Source: Macrostomum hystrix
Lineage: Eukaryota; Animalia; Platyhelminthes
Length of the DNA stretch: 64,000 bases
Reading direction: 5' to 3'
NCBI GenBank assembly: GCA_950097015.1
Contig: CATNEN010000038.1
Coordinates: 11,718,001-11,782,000, forward strand
Positions within the stretch are counted from its first letter, which is position 1. Each line of letters starts with the position of its first letter. The translations under genes were made by a program, and so were the position numbers. This document shows, one piece after another, positions 3,456 through 57,300 of the stretch. A model generated the notes under the pieces. It saw only the letters and a program-made list of their open reading frames with translations. It did no database searches and was not told the DNA's origin.

Positions 3456-4820
3456 TTACTGATCCAAGTCCTTTTCAATCTCCTCAATTTCTTCTTCCTC
3501 ACCTTCGACGGTGTCCACGCCGACCTCTTCATAGTCCTTCTGCATGGCGCCGAGGACCTCGCGGGCCTCAGCGAACTCGCCCTCCTCCATGCCCTCGCCC
3601 ACATACCAGTGCACAAATGCGCGCTTCGAATAGAGCAGGTCGAACTTGTACGCCAAGCGGTCCCAGGCCTCCGCAATGGCCGTAGTGTTGCTGAGCATGC
3701 ACACAGCGCGCGGAACTTTAGCCAGGTCGCCACCTGGCACTGTCGTGGGCGGCTGGTAGTTAATACCCACCTTGAAACCGGTGGGGCACCAGTCGACAAA
3801 CTGAATCTCCCGCTTGGTCTTTATCTTCCGAATTGATTCGTTTATATCCTTAGAGGAGACGTCTCCGCGGTAGAGCAGGCAGCAGGCCATGTACTTGCCG
3901 TGCCGCGGGTCGCACTTTACCATCTGGTTGGAGGTTTCGAAGCACGCGTTGGTTATGTCGTTTACTTTTAACTGTTCGTGATTGGCCTTCTCCGTGGAGA
4001 TTATGGGCGCGTAAGTTGCTAGGGGGAAATGAATTTTTGGGTAGGGCACTAAATTCGTCTGGAACTCGGTGATGTCAACGTTGAGAGAACCTTCAAAGCG
4101 AAGCGACACGGTGATGGATGAGACAATCTGGGCGATGATTCGGTTCAGGTTGGTGTAGGCCGGCCTATCAACGTCCAAGCTGCGCCGACAGACGTCGTAG
4201 ATGGCCTCGTTGTCGACCATGAAGGTACAGTCAGAGTGTCGCATGGTGCCGTTAGTGCAGAGGATAGCGTTGAATGGCTCCACAATGGCAGTTGATACCT
4301 GGGGCGCTGGGTAGATTGCAAACTGAAGCTTGGCTCTCTTGCCGTACTCGGTGGCAAGCTTATCCATGAGTAAGGTGGTGAAACCAGCTCCCGTGCCACC
4401 GCCAAAGGAGTGGAACACAAGAAAGCCCTGCAGGCCGCTGCAGTTCTCGGTTAGACGATGAAGAACCTCCCGGACTTTGCCTATGAGCTCCTTGCCGATG
4501 GTGTAATGACCCCTAGCGTAGTTGTTTGCGGCGTCCTCATTGCCAGTGATGAGCTGCTCCGGGTGAAACAGCTGCCTGTACGTGCCAGTGCGCACCTCGT
4601 CGATTACAGTTGGTTCAAGGTCTACTATTAACGTTCTCGGAACGTAGCGACCTGAGGGAGTTTCAGAGAAGAATGCACTTGAAGAATCGTCGCATTTTTC
4701 TTGACCGGAACTCATCAAACCATCGGCCTGAATACCGTGCTCCAGGCAGTACAGCTCCCAGCAGGCGTTGCCTATCTGGACGCCCGCCTGGCCAACGTGG
4801 ATGGAGATGCACTCGCGCAT
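3456..4820 (-). CDS. TUBA: Alpha-tubulin, divergent intronless isotype (454 aa)
   Basis: MREC N-terminus, [17 protein letters not shown](A)[36 protein letters not shown], acidic tail. Minus-strand AATAAA near 3161. Confidence 0.97.
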
Positions 4821-6417: not shown

Positions 6418-7400
6418 TCACCTCTCAGTCTCACCTTCTAATCTAATGTCTCACCCCTCAGTCTCACCCCTCAGTCTCACCCTTTAGTCTCACCTTCTAA
6501 TCTAATGTCTCACCCCTCAGTCTCACCCTCTATTCTAGTGTCTCACCCCTCAGTCTCACCCCTCAGTCTCACCTTCTAATCTAATGTCTCACCCATCAGT
6601 CTCACCCCTCAGTCTCACCTTCTAATCTAATGTCTCACCCATCAGTCTCACCCCTCAGTCTCACCTTCTAATCTAATGTCTCACCCATCAGTCTCACCCC
6701 TCAGTCTCACCTTCTAATCTATTGTCTCACCCCTCAGTCTCACCCTCTATTCTAGTGTCTCACCCCTCAGTCTCACCCCTCAGTCTCACCCTTTAGTCTC
6801 ACCTTCTAATCTAATGTCTCACCCCTCAGTCTCACCCTCTATTCTAGTGTCTCACCCCTCAGTCTCACCCCTCAGTCTCACCTTCTAATCTAATGTCTCA
6901 CCCATCAGTCTCACCCCTCAGTCTCACCTTCTAATCTAATGTCTCACCGCTCAGTCTCACCCTCTATTCTAGTGTCTCACCCCTCAGTCTCACCCCTCAG
7001 TCTCACCCCTCAGTCTCACCCCTCAGTCTCACCTTCTAATCTAATGTCTCACCCCTCAGTCTCACCCCTCAGTCTCACCCCTCAGTCCCACCTTCTAATC
7101 TAATGTCTCAACCCTCAGTCTCACCCCTCAGTCTCACCTTCTAATCTAATGTCTCACCCCTCAGTCTCACCCCTCAGTCTCACCTTCTAATCTAATGTCT
7201 CACCCCTCAGTCTCACCTTCTAATCTAATGTCTCACCCCTCAGTCTCACCCCTCAGTCTCACCTTCTAATCTAATGTCTCACCCCTCAGTCTCACCTTCT
7301 AATCTAATGTCTCACCCCTCAGTCTCACCTTCTAATCTAATGTCTCACCCCTCAGTCTCACCGCTTCTCATACAGTGTCTCACCCCTCAGTCTCACCCTT
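6418..7400. repeat. Compound minisatellite (GTCTCACCCCTCA / GTCTCACCTTCTAATCTAAT)
   Basis: Tandem mixture of 13-bp and about 20-bp units sharing GTCTCACC. Confidence 0.95.
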
Positions 7401-7900
7401 GCCCTGCATTGAATAGTTTATTACGATTTAACAATCCCAGAAGTGAAATATGCAGAGAGGGGTCAAATAAACAGCAATTATTTCATGCCAATGGCCGTAG
7501 CGAGCGAGTGCACACTTCTCTCGCTTTGCAAAACTATTAAAATAGGATGAAAATATTTAATTTATAAAAAAAAACAGAATGTAGAATATACATTTTTAAT
7601 TTTGACCAATACTCGAGAAATGTGAAGTGGCCGATTTTTAATAAGGCTGGCAATAGCTTGGTAGTTTTCAAAGTACACAAACTGTTGCCCCTGCTGAATG
7701 AGTAAAACGGAGTAAATGAAATTAAGCTAGCCTTGGATTGGTCCGGCCCGCCCTGACTGCTCACGAACAGAATAAGCATATTAAACCAACGCTAGGAATG
7801 CGGAGTTTTGTGAAGCCATGAAATTTTAGAGCAGTAGATTAACTTCTCAACCGAAAGCTGGTCGTAGCGAGAGTGGTTGACAAAGAAATAATAATAAACA

Positions 7901-8536
7901 ATGGCTAGTTATGAATGCAGCAGTCTGGCAATCATCATTCTGATCATATGCGCGTCTCTGGTGAGTAAATAGTCAGCTAAGGAATCACACTCCCTCCACT
8001 CCACTCACTCCACTTGATTTGCACAGCTGCACATAACCTTGTCAAGTTAAACCAATTTCACCATTAGGATTTTTTTATCCGAGTTCGAGTCATGCAATGA
8101 CATTTTTAATTTCCGTGACATGCAATATCTACAATAGAATACCTAACGAATGTGACAGACCACCTGCAGAACTCGAAGATCAAATCACATGCAGACAGAC
8201 AGGCAGACAGACAGGCAGACAGACAGGCAGACAGACAGACAGACAGACAGGCAGACAGACAGGCAGACAGACAGGCAGACAGACAGGCAGACAGACAGGC
8301 AGACAGACAGGCAGACAGACAGGCAGACAGACAGGCAGACAGACAGACAGACAGACAGGCAGACAGACAGGCAGACAGACAGGCAGACAGACAGGCAGAC
8401 AGACAGGCAGACAGACAGGCAGACAGACAGGCAGACAGACAGGCAGACAGACAGGCAGATAGACAGGCAGACAGACAGGCAGACAGACAGGCAGACAGAC
8501 AGGCAGACAGACAGGCAGACAGGCAGGCAGGCAGAC

Positions 8537-8628
<92 letters not shown>

Positions 8629-8659
8629 AGGCAGGCAGGCATGCAGGCAGGCAGGACGG

Positions 8660-8723
<64 letters not shown>

Positions 8724-10909
8724 CAAACATCGTTAATCCATCCAATGATCCGGATAATCATTTCCCAGAGGACCAGCATGTTTAAGATAGTTCCCAGGTA
8801 AATAATAGATCAAACATTAACAATTTTAAAGCTTATCTTCTGAGAGAAAAATTAAATGAAAGGCCTGAAACGGAATAAGTAACGAATGAGAAAAACGTTT
8901 TCTTGAATAGAAACGGGACCAGATTACAGAAGCCAACATACTGCTGATGTTGCCTGTTTGATGATGACGTAATAGGCGGAATTGTCAGCCAAAATCGTTG
9001 ACCAATTATTGATGCAATCTTGTCAATCTTAGCCATTCTTTGGCACATTCTTAGAACCCGATTTGTCTCCATGCAGGGGTCCTCAGCTTACCTGTTTGTA
9101 CCCCCGTTATCATTGCGAGAGTGTCTGCGAGCTGATTGAGCTAATTTGTCCAATCTTGCTACTCACAAAATCTACTCGCGTACTTTTCGTTTTTTTCCTT
9201 TGAAAGGAACTTTTCTTACTCCTCCTCGTAGTTTCATTTCAATTAATCGATCAACTACACCATTCATCTACGAGTACTAATTAGTTGCACGCTATTTAGT
9301 TGTGATGTTTGTCGCGTAATGCATGAAGACGGCTATCAACAGCCATCGATAGCGGGGTCCCAGGGGTGTGTAATGCGGGCTGAACGAAGGCACCACTAAT
9401 TAGGTCCTGAAGCAACAGTCAGAAGAGAACGCTGTGTTCTTGTACAGCGGTAGAGCGTTAATTCGCTATCAATGCTGCACAGGTGGGATCACACACAGAT
9501 TTTGCCTTAATTAATGTCAGCGGGAAGGATTTTGGCTTTTCACATCCAAAACTGATATTTTTTGTCACTTCCGATTACATTCAGCTGACAGGAACTCGGA
9601 CGCTGAACTACACCGAAACGGATCCAACATCAAAGCTAGAGCAGCAACTTCGCAGTCGAGAACGCAGCTGTCAATCTAGTCTGGTCCCGGGTCGCCTCTC
9701 CGACATGACCGCCGATGTCAAAGTTTGCAGCGGTCAGTTTGACGGTTTTCTGTGCTGGCCGTCGGCTGCCATTGGGTCGAAAATTTCCCTGCCTTGTCCA
9801 GCCGACGTCTTTGCCATCAACGCGTCAGCAAATAGGCTGGCAACTCGCCGATGTCTGGCTGGCGGTCGATGGCAGCTCAACATCAGACGGACGGACTTTC
9901 ATCCGCTGACAGACTACTCAGAGTGCCTGATGGTTGGCGGGGCCAAGTCTGCTATTCGCCTGTACAATCTGGTAAGGCCTAATTGACTATAGGCTACTAC
10001 GGTGAGGCTCGGGTGAGTGGCAGACCGATTGAAAGCGTTCGCCTCTCTCACCAAGGTCCCTGAGCTCGATACCGCGGCGAGGCCACATTCATTTGGGGCG
10101 CAGCCGCGGAGAGAAGGCTCCAGAGGGCCAACCTCCAAGGCACAGTGAGAGTGCACACTGCCGGACGATGAGAAAGTCAGGTCAGTTGTACACACCTGAG
10201 TGAGAGTGTGCTCAGGAGTCAGCGAAATGGGCAGAATTGCCTCCTCGCTGGCCAATGTGTCACCAAACGATGTGCCATGCCCGTACCCAGTAGTATCGTA
10301 TGAAGACATTGATTTCACGTTTTTTTCACATTCCAAAGACGCAGATGTTCTTTATAAAAAATCCATCGTTTTTCGAAGACACAAAAGGAATGACACAAGC
10401 TGCACAGCTGCAGCCATTGCTCAAGAAACACTAGTAGTGGCTCTTGAGCATGTCCCGACTAAACAGGATATCTATTATAATTTCTAAATTCGCCTATTTT
10501 CTTACTCAATGCTCAGATGCAGCTGACTAAGGTGAGCAACCGGACTCAGCAGATGAGGCTCAGAGTTGAGCGAATCGTCTGCCTCGGTTCCAGGCAAGCT
10601 GGAAATCCATCCTCGAGTGCTCGGGTCCCCACTTGCGGCTCCGTGTTTGACGGCGTCCTCTGCTGGCCGCCACAGCCCGCCGGTACGCTGGGCCGTCAGC
10701 CCTGCCCGGACTACCTCAACGAGGTTCAGCGAGACGGCTTCGCCAGCCGGCTGTGCCAGGACAATGGCACCTGGCAGCTGGGCGGATGGACCAACTTCAC
10801 CGACTGCCTGCCAGCTGAACTGGCCGCTGCGGCCGCTGCCACCGGCACCATTGCTGATGGCTCCGAGGCGCTGGCTGCAGCCAAAGTAAGCCGTCCTGCC
10901 TGCCTGCCG

Positions 10910-10940
<31 letters not shown>

Positions 10941-10941
10941 G

Positions 10942-11028
<87 letters not shown>

Positions 11029-14000
11029 TACCTGCTTTTCTGTCTGCCTGCCACATTGTTTATCTGTCTGCCTGTCTGTCTGTCTGCCGGCTCGCCTGTC
11101 TGCCTGCTTGCCTGTCTGGCTGCCTGTACCGATTCACCGATGTTTAAGCCTGCTTGTAGTACTCGTTTAAAAACTAATTCCGGCCTAATTACAGATGCAC
11201 CTGGCAATAATGAGCAAAATCGGTCTGGTTGGTCACAGCTTGTCTCTGGCTACGCTACTAATTGCTATAGTCATTTTAGCCAGTTTCAGGTAAATATCAA
11301 GCAAAAATTTGCACACTACTACAAGTAATACACATCAGCAAATAAAACTAGTTTTCAACATTCAGACGCCTGCACTGCCGACGAAATTGCATTCACATCA
11401 ATCTGTACACAGCATTCGGTTTGAGAGCAATCAGTCATTTCGTTAATCGCGCTTTGCCGTCCAACAATGCGGTATGTTTCAAACACTAAAATATTGATTT
11501 CTACCATAGACTTTGATCGGCGTCTAGAAATTCATCCATTTTCGCGGACTCCATTTACTCGTAGTATTTTGATGGCTCTTTAACTAAAAAATCGCCTTAG
11601 TCTATGGTATAAACCATCCAAATTTGATGAGCAGAAATAGCTAATAGTCTATGGTAAAGCCTTGATGTCTATGTTTGAGGTCTTGGTTCTCACCAAAAAC
11701 GTATGTGAGAATAACATAAAATCTAATAATAATACTATAAATATTTGTTTTCAACCTCAGACTCTGATGTGCCGTCTGAACCAATCGCTGATGACTTTCA
11801 CCGTAATTGGCAGCTTCACGTGGGTGTTCGTGGAGGCGCTACACCTGTACATGCTAATATTTGTCAACGCAATGAGCGAAGAGAGGCTTTCAACCGCGGC
11901 CTACATTGGGATCGGCTGGGGTTGGTGCCGAAAACTGCTCTCAATTTTGATCAAAAAGTATTTTACTATGTAAAATGTCACAGTCAAACCTAACTCGAAT
12001 ATTTTACTAGGCCTAACCTGCACAGTTACTGCGGCCTGGGTTCTTCTGCGTCTTCTGCTTGACAACAGAAACTGCTGGCGAGAGTACCGACCGCTTGGGC
12101 CTGACATCTGGTTATTGAACGTTTATCTGGCGCTCCTAGTGGTGGTGAGAAATTGGACGCTCTGCGTTTGAGAATCTGGAGACAGGGGGTGAGAGACATG
12201 GATGAGAGACAGGGGGTGAGAGACAGGGGGTGAGAGACATGGATGAGAGACAGGGGGTGAGAGACATGGATGAGAGACAGGGGGTGAGAGACAGGGGGTG
12301 AGAGACAGGGGTGAGGAAGGGGCGAGTGGGTCAGCGGCTAACGTCGCTGCCTCGCACTCCAAAGGACGCTAGTTCGATTCACCCTTCAAGTCACGATTAA
12401 TTTCGGGACTTGTTGGGGGGGGAATGGACAGTAGCGACCGGCGGAGGTGCACCATATTTCGTGCAATCAAAGCTTGAAATAATAGCTTCGCTCCTACCTT
12501 CTGTGTGCCTGTTCTGCGTTGTACGAGCGTATGAGTTTGTGCGTTGGCGCTGGTGCGTTAGACCTTGCGGGGGGTGGCTGGAGGGCGGATGTACACCGCC
12601 GCGCGCTCTCTGGAATTCCGTCAGCGCGATTGGATAAGTGTACACTCATCACCCGGCCCCCCCTGAGGACTGATTTCTTATCAGCCTTCCGCCCCGGCTT
12701 GGTCTGCTCTGTGCGTGTGGGGCGGGGGTGGGGGACATTGCTGCCTATTCTGGGTGCCTCCTGCCCTCCCCGGCTGGTCTGTGCTGCTGTATGTGGTGCC
12801 TGCTCAGGGGAGGCGGCGCGATGGGCGCTAAAGCGCCTAGTTCGCCGGTCTGGGGGCGTGCCGCTCCGTCGCTTGTGCGACAAGTGCCCCGGGCCCCCCT
12901 GCAGATAGATAGATAGACAGGGGTGAGAGACAGGGGTGGGAGACAGGGGTGAGAGACAGGGGTGAGAGACAGGGGTGGGAGACGGGGGGTGAGAGAGAGG
13001 GGTGAGAGACAGGGGTGAGAGACGGGGGGTGAGAGACAGGGGTGAGAGACGGGGGGTGAGAGACAGGGGTGGGAGACGGGGGGTGAGAGACAGGGGGTGA
13101 GAGACATGGATGAGAGACAGGGGTGAGAGACAGGGCGTGAGAGTCGAGGTGGCTGTGCTGGACACATCGAACAGCCAGATGACCTTCATGCCTCTTTCAA
13201 GCTGAACGCGGTTCTATTCGCCAAGATAGTTCGCGAACTGTTCATCAAACTGAAGCGCCAGTCGGCCAGTGACGTCTCCACAATGCAGCCTTATGTGTGA
13301 GTACACAACTTACAGTAACAAACGCTGGAAAATAATTAATCTAAAGATGCTGTGTTGTTCATTTTAGGAAGCTGTGGAAGTCCACCTGCCTTCTAATCTT
13401 AGTGTTTGGAATCTATTACATCATCTTCCTGCCCGTTGCCATGGTGCCCAAGGATCGACTGGGCGAGACGCTGGACATTGTGCACTTGTATTATGAGCAT
13501 TTCTTCAATTCATTTCAGGTTAGCAAATGGGCCTATGACAATTAGCTGGTGTGTTTGCTTAACTCTGTTGGCAGTCGAACATCTTCGGGATATTCAGTGA
13601 TTATTGTCGGAGACCCTGGTGAAAGGGACAACAAACATGGCTCTGTATAAACCTCATTGGCAAATCCATAAAAAATTTACTTTTATCAATCCAAAACAGT
13701 CATCAATGACAGCCGACACGATTACATTATGAAATTTTGTGAGCAGAAAAATTATGCCTATATTTGAGATTCCTGCCACCAGACGGTCCATCAAGAATCG
13801 TTGAATATCTCGTTGTTGTCCTTTGAGTCCTTTGGTAACTGACTATGTACCGCGAGACACGAACGCGTTTTCCCTTCAGGGCTTCTTCGCCGCCCTGCTA
13901 TTCTGCTTCGTCAATTCGGACGTGCGTCACGAGCTGCACCGGCAGGCGAGGAAGCTGCAGCTGGCAGCCTGGCTCGCCCCGGGCAACAGCCGGCGACGGG

Positions 14001-14209
14001 TGGCAACAAAGAGCCGAGCAAACAGCCGCAACAATGGCAGCCACGGAAACGATAACAGCGGCGGCAGTCAGAGTGCACTTCGGGCTGACTGGTCGCAGGT
14101 GCGAGTAGCGCGCCGTCGAGGTCAAGAGGAGCGTCGGCAGGGCCAGCCGTTGTCAAGGACGCGTTGCGCCAGCGATGGAATAGAGACTCAGGAGGTTTGT
14201 AGAGTCTGA
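7901..14209 (+). CDS. Class B1 (secretin-family) GPCR, PTH-receptor-like, with two tandem hormone-binding domains (about 628 aa, 10 exons)
   Basis: GT-AG, frame-consistent exons: 7901-7960 (signal peptide MASYECSSLAIIILIICASL), 9585-9971 (ECD1), 10517-10885 (ECD2), 11195-11289 (TM1 GHSLSL..FR), 11366-11471 (RLHCRRNCIHINL), 11761-11920 (WVFVEALHL..IGWG), 12011-12144, 13202-13296, 13368-13518 (KSTCLLILVFGIYY..FFNSFQ), 13880-14209 (GFFAALLFCFVNSDV). Confidence 0.9.
8191..8724. repeat. (GACA)/(GGCA) compound microsatellite in GPCR intron 1
   Basis: Seen directly; source of the RQTD/LSVC ORFs. Confidence 0.97.
10010..10290 (+). mobile_element. tRNA-derived SINE family A copy (between the two ECD exons)
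   Basis: A-box-like TGGCAGACCG and B-box-like GCTCGATACC. Body GGGGCGCAGCCGCGGAGAGAAGGCT...GGCAGAATTGCC is shared with copies at 40394, 43300(-) and 51367. Confidence 0.85.
10890..11125. repeat. (TGCC)/(TGTC) microsatellite in GPCR intron 3
   Basis: Seen directly; reverse complement of the 8191-8724 array. Confidence 0.95.
12178..13142. repeat. GAGAGACAGGGG(G)T minisatellite in GPCR intron 7, split by an insertion
   Basis: Array blocks at 12178-12315 and 12915-13142. Confidence 0.9.
12318..12916 (+). mobile_element. GC-rich SINE-like insertion with tRNA-like head and (AGAT)n tail
   Basis: Head GGGCGAGTGGGTCAGCGGCTAACG...GTTCGATTC; 3' hairpin GTCGC-TTGT-GCGAC; tail AGATAGATAGATAG. Single copy in the window. 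Confidence 0.55.
13570..13815 (+). repeat. Dispersed repeat of about 250 bp, copy 1 (GPCR last intron)
   Basis: Reverse-complement similarity to 15583-15855, e.g. TTTTGTGAGCAGAAAAATTATGCCTATATT, GACCCTGGTGA, AGAATCGTTGAATATCTCG. Confidence 0.8.
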
Positions 14210-14329
14210 AGCTAGCTACATGCACAGTGTGGCATCTAAACAGAAGAGTCCTTTTTGAAAATAACTAAATAGTCGAGTTGAGAATGAAGTCCAGTTTATG
14301 AATTTACTAAACTTATACACTCTCAGTTA

Positions 14330-14400
14330 TGGGGCAGAGCGGTTTACGCGTTCGCCTATCGCGCCAAGGTCCCTAAGTTCGATTCTGCGAAGAGGCCAAA
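14330..14400 (+). mobile_element. SINE family A, head-only fragment
   Basis: GGCAGAGCGGTTTACGCGTTCGCCTATCGCGCCAAGGTCCCTAAGTTCGATTC matches the family A heads. Confidence 0.7.
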
Positions 14401-15582
14401 CTTCGATTTGGGTATTAGAAGCTTTGTCAAACAGTTTGACGAAAATCCCATAAACCGGCAAGGAACAGCATCCGAGTAGGGGCCTAAGCCATAGACACAG
14501 AATATCTAATATCCAGATTGGGGCCGCCAAGCATTCCAAGCTAGTTTTACCATAGACAATGGCTAGGCCCAATAATACACGGATTAGATAGGCAACTGGC
14601 CGGGCAAAGCCATAGATCGTTTATTCCCGATGCGATCTATATGGGCTAAGCTGGGGATTAAACTTGGGTATGTGTGGCGCCATCAAAATAGGGATAAAAA
14701 CGTGGCCCTATTTATATGGAATAACAAGTGATATTCTATTTCTAAGACTAGAGCATAAAAATTGCAGATCTTCGAGTGTGTACCACTGCAGCGCATCACA
14801 TCAGCGGGGCTCAATGGTCTCCGGGAGTCGGAGCAAAGTCCGGACAGACAAGCGTGACCGCGGCCTCGACGAGGTTGACTTCCGCGACAAAACGCGTCAA
14901 CAGTGCGCTTCGGTTTACACTGAACAATTCCATCCCAATATGCTTCGTCTATTCGTATATCGACGTCAGATGCATCCTGTCTTAAAATTTTTTCCACGAG
15001 ATAATCTCGTAAAGGACAATCAATTGAATAAGTTCGCTCGTTAATAAGACATAAAAACTGACGCATGACGTCGCAGTCGTTAAAATCTATTTGTTAAAAA
15101 CAAGAATTTATATGGTTCCAATAATAATATTAATGAATCGTTGCGTTTTTCAAGTCTTCTGATAGCATATGAGTGAAACAATTGATGTTGTAAAAGAGAT
15201 GACTATAATTCAGTGTGGGAGGCATCACCAGCAGCTATTACATTAGTAATGGGCTTGACAGCGTTGCCATTTATGACAGGCAGCATCAGTTCTACAATCA
15301 ATTATTCTACCTGTACACTAGACTGAACTGCGAGACCCACTGAAATACTAAAAAATTCTCATTCTTCTCATCCAATCCTCCCGCACCGTCGCAAATCAAA
15401 CGAAGCAATTAAAAGCATATAAGCATAACAGTAGTGAGACCACGGGAGGTTATTTCAAATACCAAGTATTTCTTTTTTTCTCCCAAAATGTTCAACGAAT
15501 CGCGGTGAAAATTACAAACCCGGGCTAAAATATTTCGCTTTGTCCGATGAAACAACTTCCAGAATCACAAAACATCGATATC

Positions 15583-26671: not shown

Positions 26672-27244
26672 TCATCGATTCTCCACAAAGCCAATAGTGG
26701 CGCTAAGCTTTCTAATGGCGTCATATGTGTCAACAAGCGGAGCCACCTCGGCAGCGGCGGCGGCTGCGGCTACTGATTCAGCTGCGGGCGCTAGGAAGTT
26801 TGCATCGTCGGGACACGGTCGCCAGTCGGTGAGGGCTTCGCCAGTTAAAGAGGCCGGCTTGTAGCCAAGCTCGGCAGCTAGCCGGGTCCGGCTGATGCAG
26901 GAATAGGCGGAGGCCAGGGCAGCTGATCGAGTCCGCCTGGTGACAGTCACCAGCCTGGCCAGTAGGTCGGCCAAGTCCGGCGGCAGCGAGCCAGTAGTGT
27001 CTGCAGCGGCCGCGTAGAAACCGGCATAATCTCTGGCGCAGAGGGCGGCGCCGCATCGCCAGATGGCGCCAAGCTGAGCGCCGCCTGTGCGCTTCGGGGA
27101 CAACCGGCGCCAAAGTAGGCGGGCATTGTTCAGATCGCCAGCTAGCAGATAGAGCAGGAGTAGGCGAGAACCAGCCAGCAATTCTAGCGGCGGGCTGGCC
27201 AGCTCCAGCGACTCAAGGCTGGCGATTTCTGCGGCGATGTCGGC
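26672..27244 (-). CDS. COPS8: COP9 signalosome subunit 8 (main coding exon; start codon unresolved)
   Basis: LYLLAGDLNNARLLWRR, LGAIW.CG, RDYAGFY, AYSCI and C-terminal GFVEN match CSN8. Acceptor TTCCAG|GCC at 27244, phase 0. Confidence 0.88.
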   Translation of the reverse strand, partial: ADIAAEIASLESLELASPPLELLAGSRLLLLYLLAGDLNNARLLWRRLSPKRTGGAQLGAIWRCGAALCARDYAGFYAAAADTTGSLPPDLADLLARLVTVTRRTRSAALASAYSCISRTRLAAELGYKPASLTGEALTDWRPCPDDANFLAPAAESVAAAAAAAEVAPLVDTYDAIRKLSATIGFVENR

Positions 27245-27399
27245 CTGGAAGCGGCGTTTAAAACAAATCTTTCTGATATTTCTGATAAAGCCGGACATAT
27301 TTATAATAATATCAGACAAGCGGATTGTAAATCGATATTTAGAGGATTGCTTTTTTAAATGCACTTAATTAAACGTTTTCAATACATTTTACTTAAGCA

Positions 27400-56399: not shown

Positions 56400-57300
56400 T
56401 TTCCGCGAATCACCCAGCTCTCGAACCACTGCCGGTTCTGTCAGTCGGCTCTTTACTGCGGCCTTCAGTGCTGAGGTGGCCATCTCTCAGTCGCATTGAG
56501 AAACGGAGAATAGACGGAAACGTACGGTTTGGTCTTCCCTTTGCATCGGAAGTACGTTGGTGTGGGCTCTCGCATTGTCCGCCACCATCACGAATGGTGC
56601 GTCAACAAGTACAGACACCTCCGAGCAGAATGAATGCAGTGAAGCGTTCTTCTGTGAAGCCACCAACGTGACATGCATAGTGAACTAATCCAAGCTGGGG
56701 ACTCACTGCGAGAACGACGGGGACATTGGGACCGCGCTGAACATCGGTGATTCGCACAGCACGATCGCCAGCAGCTGACCAGCCTTTAGACCGCAAAGTC
56801 CACAAGTTAAAGCCACATTCATCGACGTATATCAGATGCTCTTGAAGGTGACCCTCATTCATCATCCATTGCATGTACATCGCTCGCGCATCCTTGGTGC
56901 CTGGCGCATTCCAGCCCGCGTGCACATGCCTGACGTCCTTTAAGGTTATCAGAGTACCATCTAGCTTCTTGCTCAGGCATTGAGTAGAAACAGCGGGTGC
57001 GTCGGGAAATTCAACAGTCAGCCTCTCTCGCATTTCACTCAATGTGATGGTCGGCTTCTCAGCAACATACCGGTGAAGTGCTTGAAGCATCTGTTCACTT
57101 ACTTTCACGTGTCTAGCCCCTCCTCTTGCTCTGTATTCTGTCCGGTTTTCCTCTAGATAGCGCTTTAGGATCAAGTTTGCGGTGGTCCTTTTGATTCCGA
57201 GGTCAATGGCCAGTCTCCTCCAGTCCCGTCCAGTGTTGTAGCTGTTAACCAGGCGCTGCCTGTCTATTAAGCATATTCTTGCATAGGGCATGGTGGGCAA
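56400..57300 (-). pseudogene. Tc1/IS630-family DDE transposase pseudogene
   Basis: HTH (LAIDLGIKRTTA), PTITLSEM, IYVDECGFN, then frameshifted VADNARAH and YSPFLNATE. TIRs not identified. Confidence 0.88.

Follow-up and report, generated by a model that had tools for sequence, protein, structure and literature searches.

The question raised by this locus is whether one receptor gene gives a protein with two hormone-binding heads, or whether the two heads are offered as alternatives by splicing. The locus lies in a stretch of 64,000 nucleotides of the Macrostomum hystrix genome (contig CATNEN010000038.1, positions 11,718,001 to 11,782,000 of the forward strand), which was analysed as a whole and is called the window below. 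The element under study is the gene at window 7901-14209 on the plus strand, predicted to be an intact ten-exon gene for a class B1 (secretin-family) G protein-coupled receptor (GPCR) of the PTH-receptor-like branch. In the textbook scheme of class B1 receptors, one ectodomain catches the hormone and the helix bundle reads it. Here two extracellular domains (ECDs), ECD-A and ECD-B, stand ahead of the only seven-transmembrane (7TM) core found in the window, and the gene structure points to a main product that carries ECD-A and ECD-B in tandem, with a probability of roughly 0.65.

Gene structure and the two ectodomain exons

The coding parts of the ten exons add up to 1887 nt, equal to 628 codons and a stop. 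Pfam, blast and PDB searches were run on each exon and never on the joined 628-aa protein, and the matches given for this gene are exon-wise ones. The exons are as follows.

7901..7960 (+), exon 1: 60 nt; start codon and a hydrophobic segment of 20 residues that resembles a signal peptide; donor GTGAGT in phase 0
9585..9971 (+), exon 2: ECD-A, the distal, fast-evolving HRM domain; 387 nt, 129 aa, six cysteines, two N-glycosylation sequons
10517..10885 (+), exon 3: ECD-B, the membrane-proximal, canonical HRM domain; 369 nt, 123 aa, six cysteines, three N-glycosylation sequons, Ala-rich stalk
11195..11289 (+), exon 4: end of the stalk and first transmembrane segment (TM1); 95 nt; 7tm_2 positions 5-29 (E 0.0053); exon-wise blast matches to class B receptors
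11366..11471 (+), exon 5: first intracellular loop (ICL1) and TM2, with the RLHC.RN.IH.NL motif; class B match
11761..11920 (+), exon 6: TM3 up to the start of TM4; 7tm_2 match in the own-genome search; PDB matches to glucagon and GLP-1 receptors
12011..12144 (+), exon 7: TM4, second extracellular loop (ECL2) and start of TM5; class B match
13202..13296 (+), exon 8: TM5 and ICL3; class B match
13368..13518 (+), exon 9: TM6, ECL3 and start of TM7; PDB matches to PTH2R and PTH1R only; 68% identity to the Macrostomum lignano protein P0002 described below
13880..14209 (+), exon 10: TM7 with the FQGF..LFCF.N.(D/E)V motif, C-terminal tail and TGA stop; class B match

A preliminary description of this DNA, made from the letters alone, had placed exons 1 to 4 at these coordinates with lengths of 60, 387, 369 and 95 nt and AG/GT boundaries, had put the junctions 1/2, 2/3 and 3/4 all in phase 0 and had arrived at a model of 628 codons; each of these statements was reproduced. 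Exon 1 has a strongly hydrophobic core within its 20 residues and is the only ATG-to-GT mini-exon in phase 0 with such a core upstream of ECD-A. Pyrimidine-rich CAG acceptors and GTAAG donors were found on both exon 2 and exon 3, and the intron between them measures 545 nt here and kilobases in the paralogs described below. All seven downstream exons (4-10) showed canonical splice sites and class B motifs, and each of them matched class B receptors. The 7tm_2 matches expected on the downstream exons were obtained per exon and in the search of the own genome, which placed them at window 11349-11465 and 11686-11925 in addition to exon 4.

The claim that both ectodomain exons encode complete but clearly diverged domains, each with six cysteines and the class B1 motifs, was upheld by the scan with the Pfam HRM domain (PF02793), for which two matches had been expected. 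Both exons exceeded the cut-off of 26.2 bits, ECD-A with an E value of 2.2e-14 (54 bits) and ECD-B with 2e-17 (63.8 bits). The FDG.(L)CWP / PCP / R.C / G.W / C motifs, which hold the D/W/P/R/G/W core of class B1, are present in the two alike. Between them the identity is 34% over 102 residues (E 4e-11), and the alignment runs over the whole length including the N-terminal helix with the first cysteine. Among PDB sequences, ECD-A matched the GLP-2R and PTH1R ECDs at about 1e-7, and the best match of ECD-B was the PTH1R ECD (E 2.8e-10).

The fold was analysed for ECD-A, for which the preliminary description had looked to structure prediction as a check. The AlphaFold2 (AF2) model gave a class B ectodomain of one helix, two hairpins and one helix, with a predicted local distance difference test score (pLDDT) of 82 and a predicted TM-score (pTM) of 0.71. 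The best Foldseek matches of this model were the ectodomains of GLP-1R, the glucagon receptor, PTH1R and the CGRP receptor, with a TM-score of up to 0.81 on the target. ECD-A and ECD-B are both, as judged from profiles and model, bona fide HRM domains, and the class B ectodomain fold is predicted to persist in ECD-A. The tail of ECD-A beyond the sixth cysteine is 15 aa long, and a short, conserved helix of aromatic and hydrophobic character is formed in it (residues 120-127 in the AF2 model). A complex prediction for ECD-A with ECD-B scored 0.01, which is no answer and weighs neither for nor against contact.

A four-gene family and its relatives

A six-frame search of the whole genome (220 Mb, 42 contigs) returned ten HRM matches, eight of which are grouped two by two on the same strand, at distances of 0.9 to 4.3 kb; 7tm_2 exons follow each of these four pairs. 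Because eight of only ten matches in the genome are paired in this way ahead of 7tm_2 exons, chance pairing is not the cause. The four loci, one of them the window gene, have a common layout of signal exon, ECD-A exon, ECD-B exon and 7TM. The A-type and B-type exons are open in all four, and their donors and acceptors all lie on codon boundaries (phase 0). The architecture that had been proposed for the window gene was therefore met again at three further loci of the own genome and in a protein model of M. lignano. The three paralogs are located as follows.

C25:3358008/3362307, paralog p1
C25:5040333/5042993, paralog p2
C1:24372298/24369260 (minus strand), paralog p3

The M. lignano protein is A0A1I8IK20 (583 aa, called P0002 here), the best bilaterian match to a two-exon profile among 1.84 billion representative proteins. 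The tree and tblastn agree that it is the ortholog of paralog p1, with which it shares 46% identity in ECD-A and 75% in ECD-B, the values for the TM exons being 73-96%. P0002 and the window gene are not orthologous to each other, and their ECDs are 30-45% identical. P0002 joins the tail of A to the head of B at the homologous junction, giving the same ECD-A to ECD-B tandem as the flatworm loci described here. No publication on P0002 was found.

The age of the duplication was analysed with a focused maximum-likelihood tree. The five A-type domains, four from this genome and one from M. lignano, formed one clade (99/96), and the five B-type domains formed another (93/91). These separate clades indicate that the ectodomain exon had already been duplicated when the four paralogs diverged and when M. 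lignano split off. The layout would then have arisen once, by this duplication, and would have been kept by all four paralogs. An arrangement with window ECD-A and window ECD-B as sisters was also tried and was rejected by the approximately unbiased test (p-AU 0.029).

The two domains differ in their history after duplication. In the same focused tree the B clade grouped with single-ECD PTHR-like receptors of molluscs, insects and lamprey. The ECD-B exon opens with a (V/L)S-x-x-x-Q helix motif, and in the mollusc relatives this motif stands directly after the signal peptide. Branch lengths for ECD-A against ECD-B were 3.88 against 0.57 in the window gene and 6.63 against 1.32 in paralog p2. 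The distal domain of p2 is the most degenerate among the four, with the G.W motif lost and a long insertion. ECD-B is read from these sequences as the ancestral canonical head, and ECD-A as a fast-evolving add-on.

The subfamily was judged exon by exon, and the window gene would belong to the protostome PTHR-like branch. The E value of P0002 was 2e-35 with PTH1R, whereas the next family reached 5e-24 and calcitonin receptors about 1e-16, and ranks 1-11 of the Foldseek search with its AF2 model were all PTH1R or PTH2R. The best PDB scores of exon 6 belonged to glucagon and GLP-1 receptors, unlike those of exon 9. Among the retrieved proteins, the best exon-wise matches carry RefSeq names such as 'PTH/PTHrP receptor-like' and 'secretin receptor-like', the mollusc models including PTHR-like ones. 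The protostome counterpart group is 'Cluster B' of Cardoso et al. 2014 (PMC3961327), and the only deorphanised PTHR-like protostome members found were Tribolium iPTHR1/2 with the ligand iPTH (PMC7224569).

Vertebrate PTH1R and PTH2R are the best matches in sequence and fold for ECD-B, exon 9 and the M. lignano ortholog. They have in common with the window gene a six-cysteine helix-hairpin-hairpin-helix ECD followed by a 7tm_2 core and, presumably, the two-domain mode of peptide binding. They have, however, one ECD split across several exons, whereas the window gene has two complete ECDs in a single exon each. The protostome PTHR-like receptors are the nearest relatives of the window 7TM exons and of ECD-B. 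All the PTHR-like relatives retrieved have a single HRM, and the distal ECD-A was found in Macrostomum-type sequences only.

Outside this branch, class B1 receptors with several HRM domains are known from databases, and the layout would have arisen independently in the PTHR-like branch and become fixed in the four-gene flatworm family. Database models with several HRMs comprise the teleost 'CGRP type 1 receptor' (four), the arthropod 'CGRP type 1 receptor-like' (two), the dipteran PDF receptor (two) and M. lignano. In the teleost calcitonin/CGRP-type receptor (Stegastes partitus XP_008287491, four HRMs) hormone-binding domains stand in tandem before one 7TM core, as here. This receptor belongs to the calcitonin subfamily, and its four copies cluster together, which indicates an independent, younger duplication; the copies of the dipteran PDF receptor likewise cluster among themselves and point to a duplication of their own. 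A fish calcitonin receptor paper of 2007, cited in PMC6283891, reportedly describes several hormone-binding domains in the receptor.

The arthropod double-HRM models (Ischnura, Penaeus, Nymphon, Centruroides, Cloeon, Varroa) resemble the window gene more closely, with a divergent distal and a canonical proximal HRM before one 7tm_2. Their place is in the calcitonin-like branch, and none of them appears among the 25 top-scoring matches of the window 7TM exons. In an 82-row domain tree ECD-A and the arthropod distal domains fell into one polytomy. Cross-scoring with hidden Markov models (HMMs) made the arthropod distal domains lean to the A profile, which may reflect only their common divergence from the canonical type. 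The arthropod distal domains are most likely convergent with ECD-A in origin.

The preliminary description had left room for double-HRM receptors of this clade being already widely documented. Models with two to four HRMs do exist, as listed above, but no description of a double HRM in flatworm or PTHR-like receptors was found in the open full-text literature. Flatworm GPCR surveys give single HRM domains only, and a duplicated ectodomain is mentioned neither in the protostome class B1 survey (PMC3961327) nor in the termite and locust neuropeptide paper (PMC4237046).

Some further features of the family loci and of the HRM search were recorded. Intron 1 of p2 (L002:2578-4180) holds a long 21-nt minisatellite, which encodes a repeated seven-residue unit in one frame and runs into the open frame of the p2 ECD-A. 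In three of the four paralogs an ATG stands right after the acceptor AG at the start of the ECD-B exon (window 10517, L002:6855, L006 minus-strand 6421). Because it leads into no hydrophobic segment, its use as an alternative start of a secreted domain is unlikely. Of the ten HRM matches, the two that stand unpaired are of other kinds. One (L004, G000 C1:17728619-17728789) lies inside a 440-aa open frame with laminin-EGF-like cysteine repeats and has the look of an adhesion-GPCR-type ectodomain, and the other (L005, C3:6244088-6244171) comes from a different class B receptor, its HRM exon being split and a 7tm_2 match lying 3 kb downstream.

Probable tandem use and the case for a splicing switch

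The preliminary description had offered two readings, a tandem double-ECD receptor and a splicing switch by which ligand specificity is chosen. The double ECD before one 7TM held at the level of the gene, with tandem use favoured, whereas nothing was found that supports a specificity chosen by splicing. Tandem use is favoured because the splice sites of both exons are strong, no signal exon lies between them, exclusivity is not enforced and the M. lignano model joins A to B. In the window gene, p2 and p3, the stretch separating the A and B exons yielded no signal-peptide exon; ECD-B has no such peptide itself and so has to be spliced to exons further upstream. Double inclusion of exons 2 and 3 stays in frame, so that nonsense-mediated decay cannot make them exclusive, and with 545 nt of intron between them steric hindrance cannot do so either. 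In the arthropod and dipteran double-HRM genes, both domains are present in each RefSeq isoform of the pairs examined.

Several points weigh against tandem use. Homologous exons of similar length with symmetric phase-0 borders are a classical signature of alternatively used exons. The A-B junction of P0002 is a prediction and not an observation, P0002 being an unreviewed automatic gene model with errors in TM1 and TM4. For P0002, the AF2 model (pTM 0.48) is confident for ECD-B and moderate for the core of ECD-A, and is without a confident arrangement of A and B. Searches with window ECD-B and p1 ECD-B, in the fragment length range, returned no short spliced-fragment proteins.

The first of these points leads to the splicing switch, in which the ECD-A and ECD-B exons would be used as cassettes or in a mutually exclusive manner, so that the same 7TM core could bear either head alone, the two together or no head, with splicing deciding the ligand selectivity. 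The similar length of the exons (129 versus 123 aa, 34% identity) and the phase-0 flanking junctions in all four paralogs speak for such a switch, and a stalk of the usual length would result if the 15-aa tail of A were followed by the beginning of exon 4. The evidence on the other side is the lack of any mechanism found to enforce exclusivity (in-frame double inclusion, 545-nt intron), the strong splice sites on both exons, the far weaker constraint on ECD-A than on ECD-B with degeneration in p2, and the database models of this and analogous families, among which no single-head isoform was found. The switch is unlikely on this balance. That it is a regulated one, conserved in the four-gene family and giving one 7TM core differing hormone specificities across cells, appears decidedly improbable; to our knowledge, selection of ligands by splicing is not a known mode for class B1 GPCRs. 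Isoforms without A, without B or without a head stay in frame because every junction is in phase 0, and forms lacking A, B or both may occur as minor products.

One feature of the window gene could act on the splicing of the two exons together, namely a pair of complementary microsatellites.

8187..8722 (no strand), intron 1: (ACAGGCAGACAG)n microsatellite, complementary to the (CCTG)n array of intron 3
10895..11126 (no strand), intron 3: (CCTG)n microsatellite, the partner of the intron 1 array

The inverted arms at 8487-8724, (CAGG/CAGA)n, and 10890-11127, (CCTG)n, are 238 nt long and 84% complementary, and they bracket exons 2 and 3 jointly as the one long inverted repeat found here. Pairing of the arrays in the pre-mRNA could loop out both exons, leading to joint skipping or to a circular RNA of 756 nt, and this would speak for a switch in the window gene only. 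The three paralog loci, however, hold no inverted repeats of at least 40 nt, and no inverted repeat common to the paralog loci was found. The complementary microsatellites are probably incidental to the receptor architecture, because they are absent from the paralog loci and the genome is full of such arrays.

It was also considered that ECD-A lies outside the receptor, either as a decaying duplicate exon or in a short secreted product of exons 1 and 2 that ends in intron 2 and serves as a soluble hormone-binding decoy. Translation continued past exon 2 would end in intron 2 after five codons, which makes a short secreted ECD-A formally possible, and ECD-A is the fastest-evolving part of the gene. 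This quick stop past the exon 2 donor is, however, not conserved in the paralogs. In M. lignano and in each of the four paralogs the A exon has stayed open and kept its six cysteines despite divergence to about 30% identity, and the confident class B ECD fold of ECD-A, the missing signal peptide of ECD-B and the single 7TM core of the window likewise oppose a dead or separate exon. A place for ECD-A outside the receptor is highly improbable. Since ECD-A is under relaxed constraint, evolving faster than ECD-B, an accessory domain fits better than an alternative sole head, and tandem use of the two ectodomains is the reading followed below.

Surroundings of the gene and meaning of the second head

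The surroundings of the gene are rich in repeats. Ahead of exon 1, window 7000-7398 is occupied by a minisatellite with a 13-nt unit, (GTCTCACCCCTCA)n. The array (AGACAGGGGTGAG)n, which is nearly the reverse complement of (GTCTCACCCCTCA)n, occurs twice in intron 7 (12179-12322 and 12915-13143), where it flanks about 590 nt of GC-rich unique sequence. Arrays similar to the 13-nt minisatellites fill window 52.6-56 kb, and the genome as a whole is very rich in satellites, in both orientations. No tRNA-like gene was called within window 7000-15000.

Three other open reading frames (ORFs) of the window were recorded. On the minus strand at 3456-4820, 3 kb upstream of the receptor, lies an ORF of 454 aa without introns that resembles alpha-tubulin, with matches to Tubulin at E 4e-57 and to Tubulin_C at E 5e-51. 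Its acidic tail and the stretch around residues 35-60 appear divergent, and the ORF could represent a retrogene or else a specialised form of tubulin. At 26672-27364 (minus strand) an ORF has a CSN8/PSMD8/EIF3K domain (E 7.5e-10) and is apparently a single-exon gene of housekeeping type. A 232-aa ORF at 56602-57300 (minus strand), with weak matches to the DDE_3 endonuclease and HTH_32, is probably the remnant of a Tc1/mariner-type transposase.

For the receptor with both heads in tandem, a mode of action modelled on PTH1R can be proposed. ECD-B would capture the C-terminal helix of the peptide hormone and deliver the N-terminus of the hormone to the helix bundle. ECD-A would serve as an accessory head that offers a second site for binding, traps the hormone by affinity or modulates the receptor intramolecularly. 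It would be tethered by its own tail helix and by the N-terminal helix of ECD-B, and from there it could add binding surface or modulate access to ECD-B.

The four PTHR-like receptors, which have kept a fast-evolving second ectodomain since before their own radiation, are a natural experiment on what an extra head does for a class B1 receptor. The extra head may be a second binding site, a built-in modulator akin to an accessory protein, or a means of splice-selected specificity. Transgenesis and RNA interference are available in Macrostomum lignano, so the question is directly testable there. The multi-ectodomain theme seems to have arisen independently in the calcitonin receptors of teleosts and the calcitonin-like receptors of arthropods as well, which suggests that the addition of ectodomains is a recurrent and hardly studied solution among these receptors.

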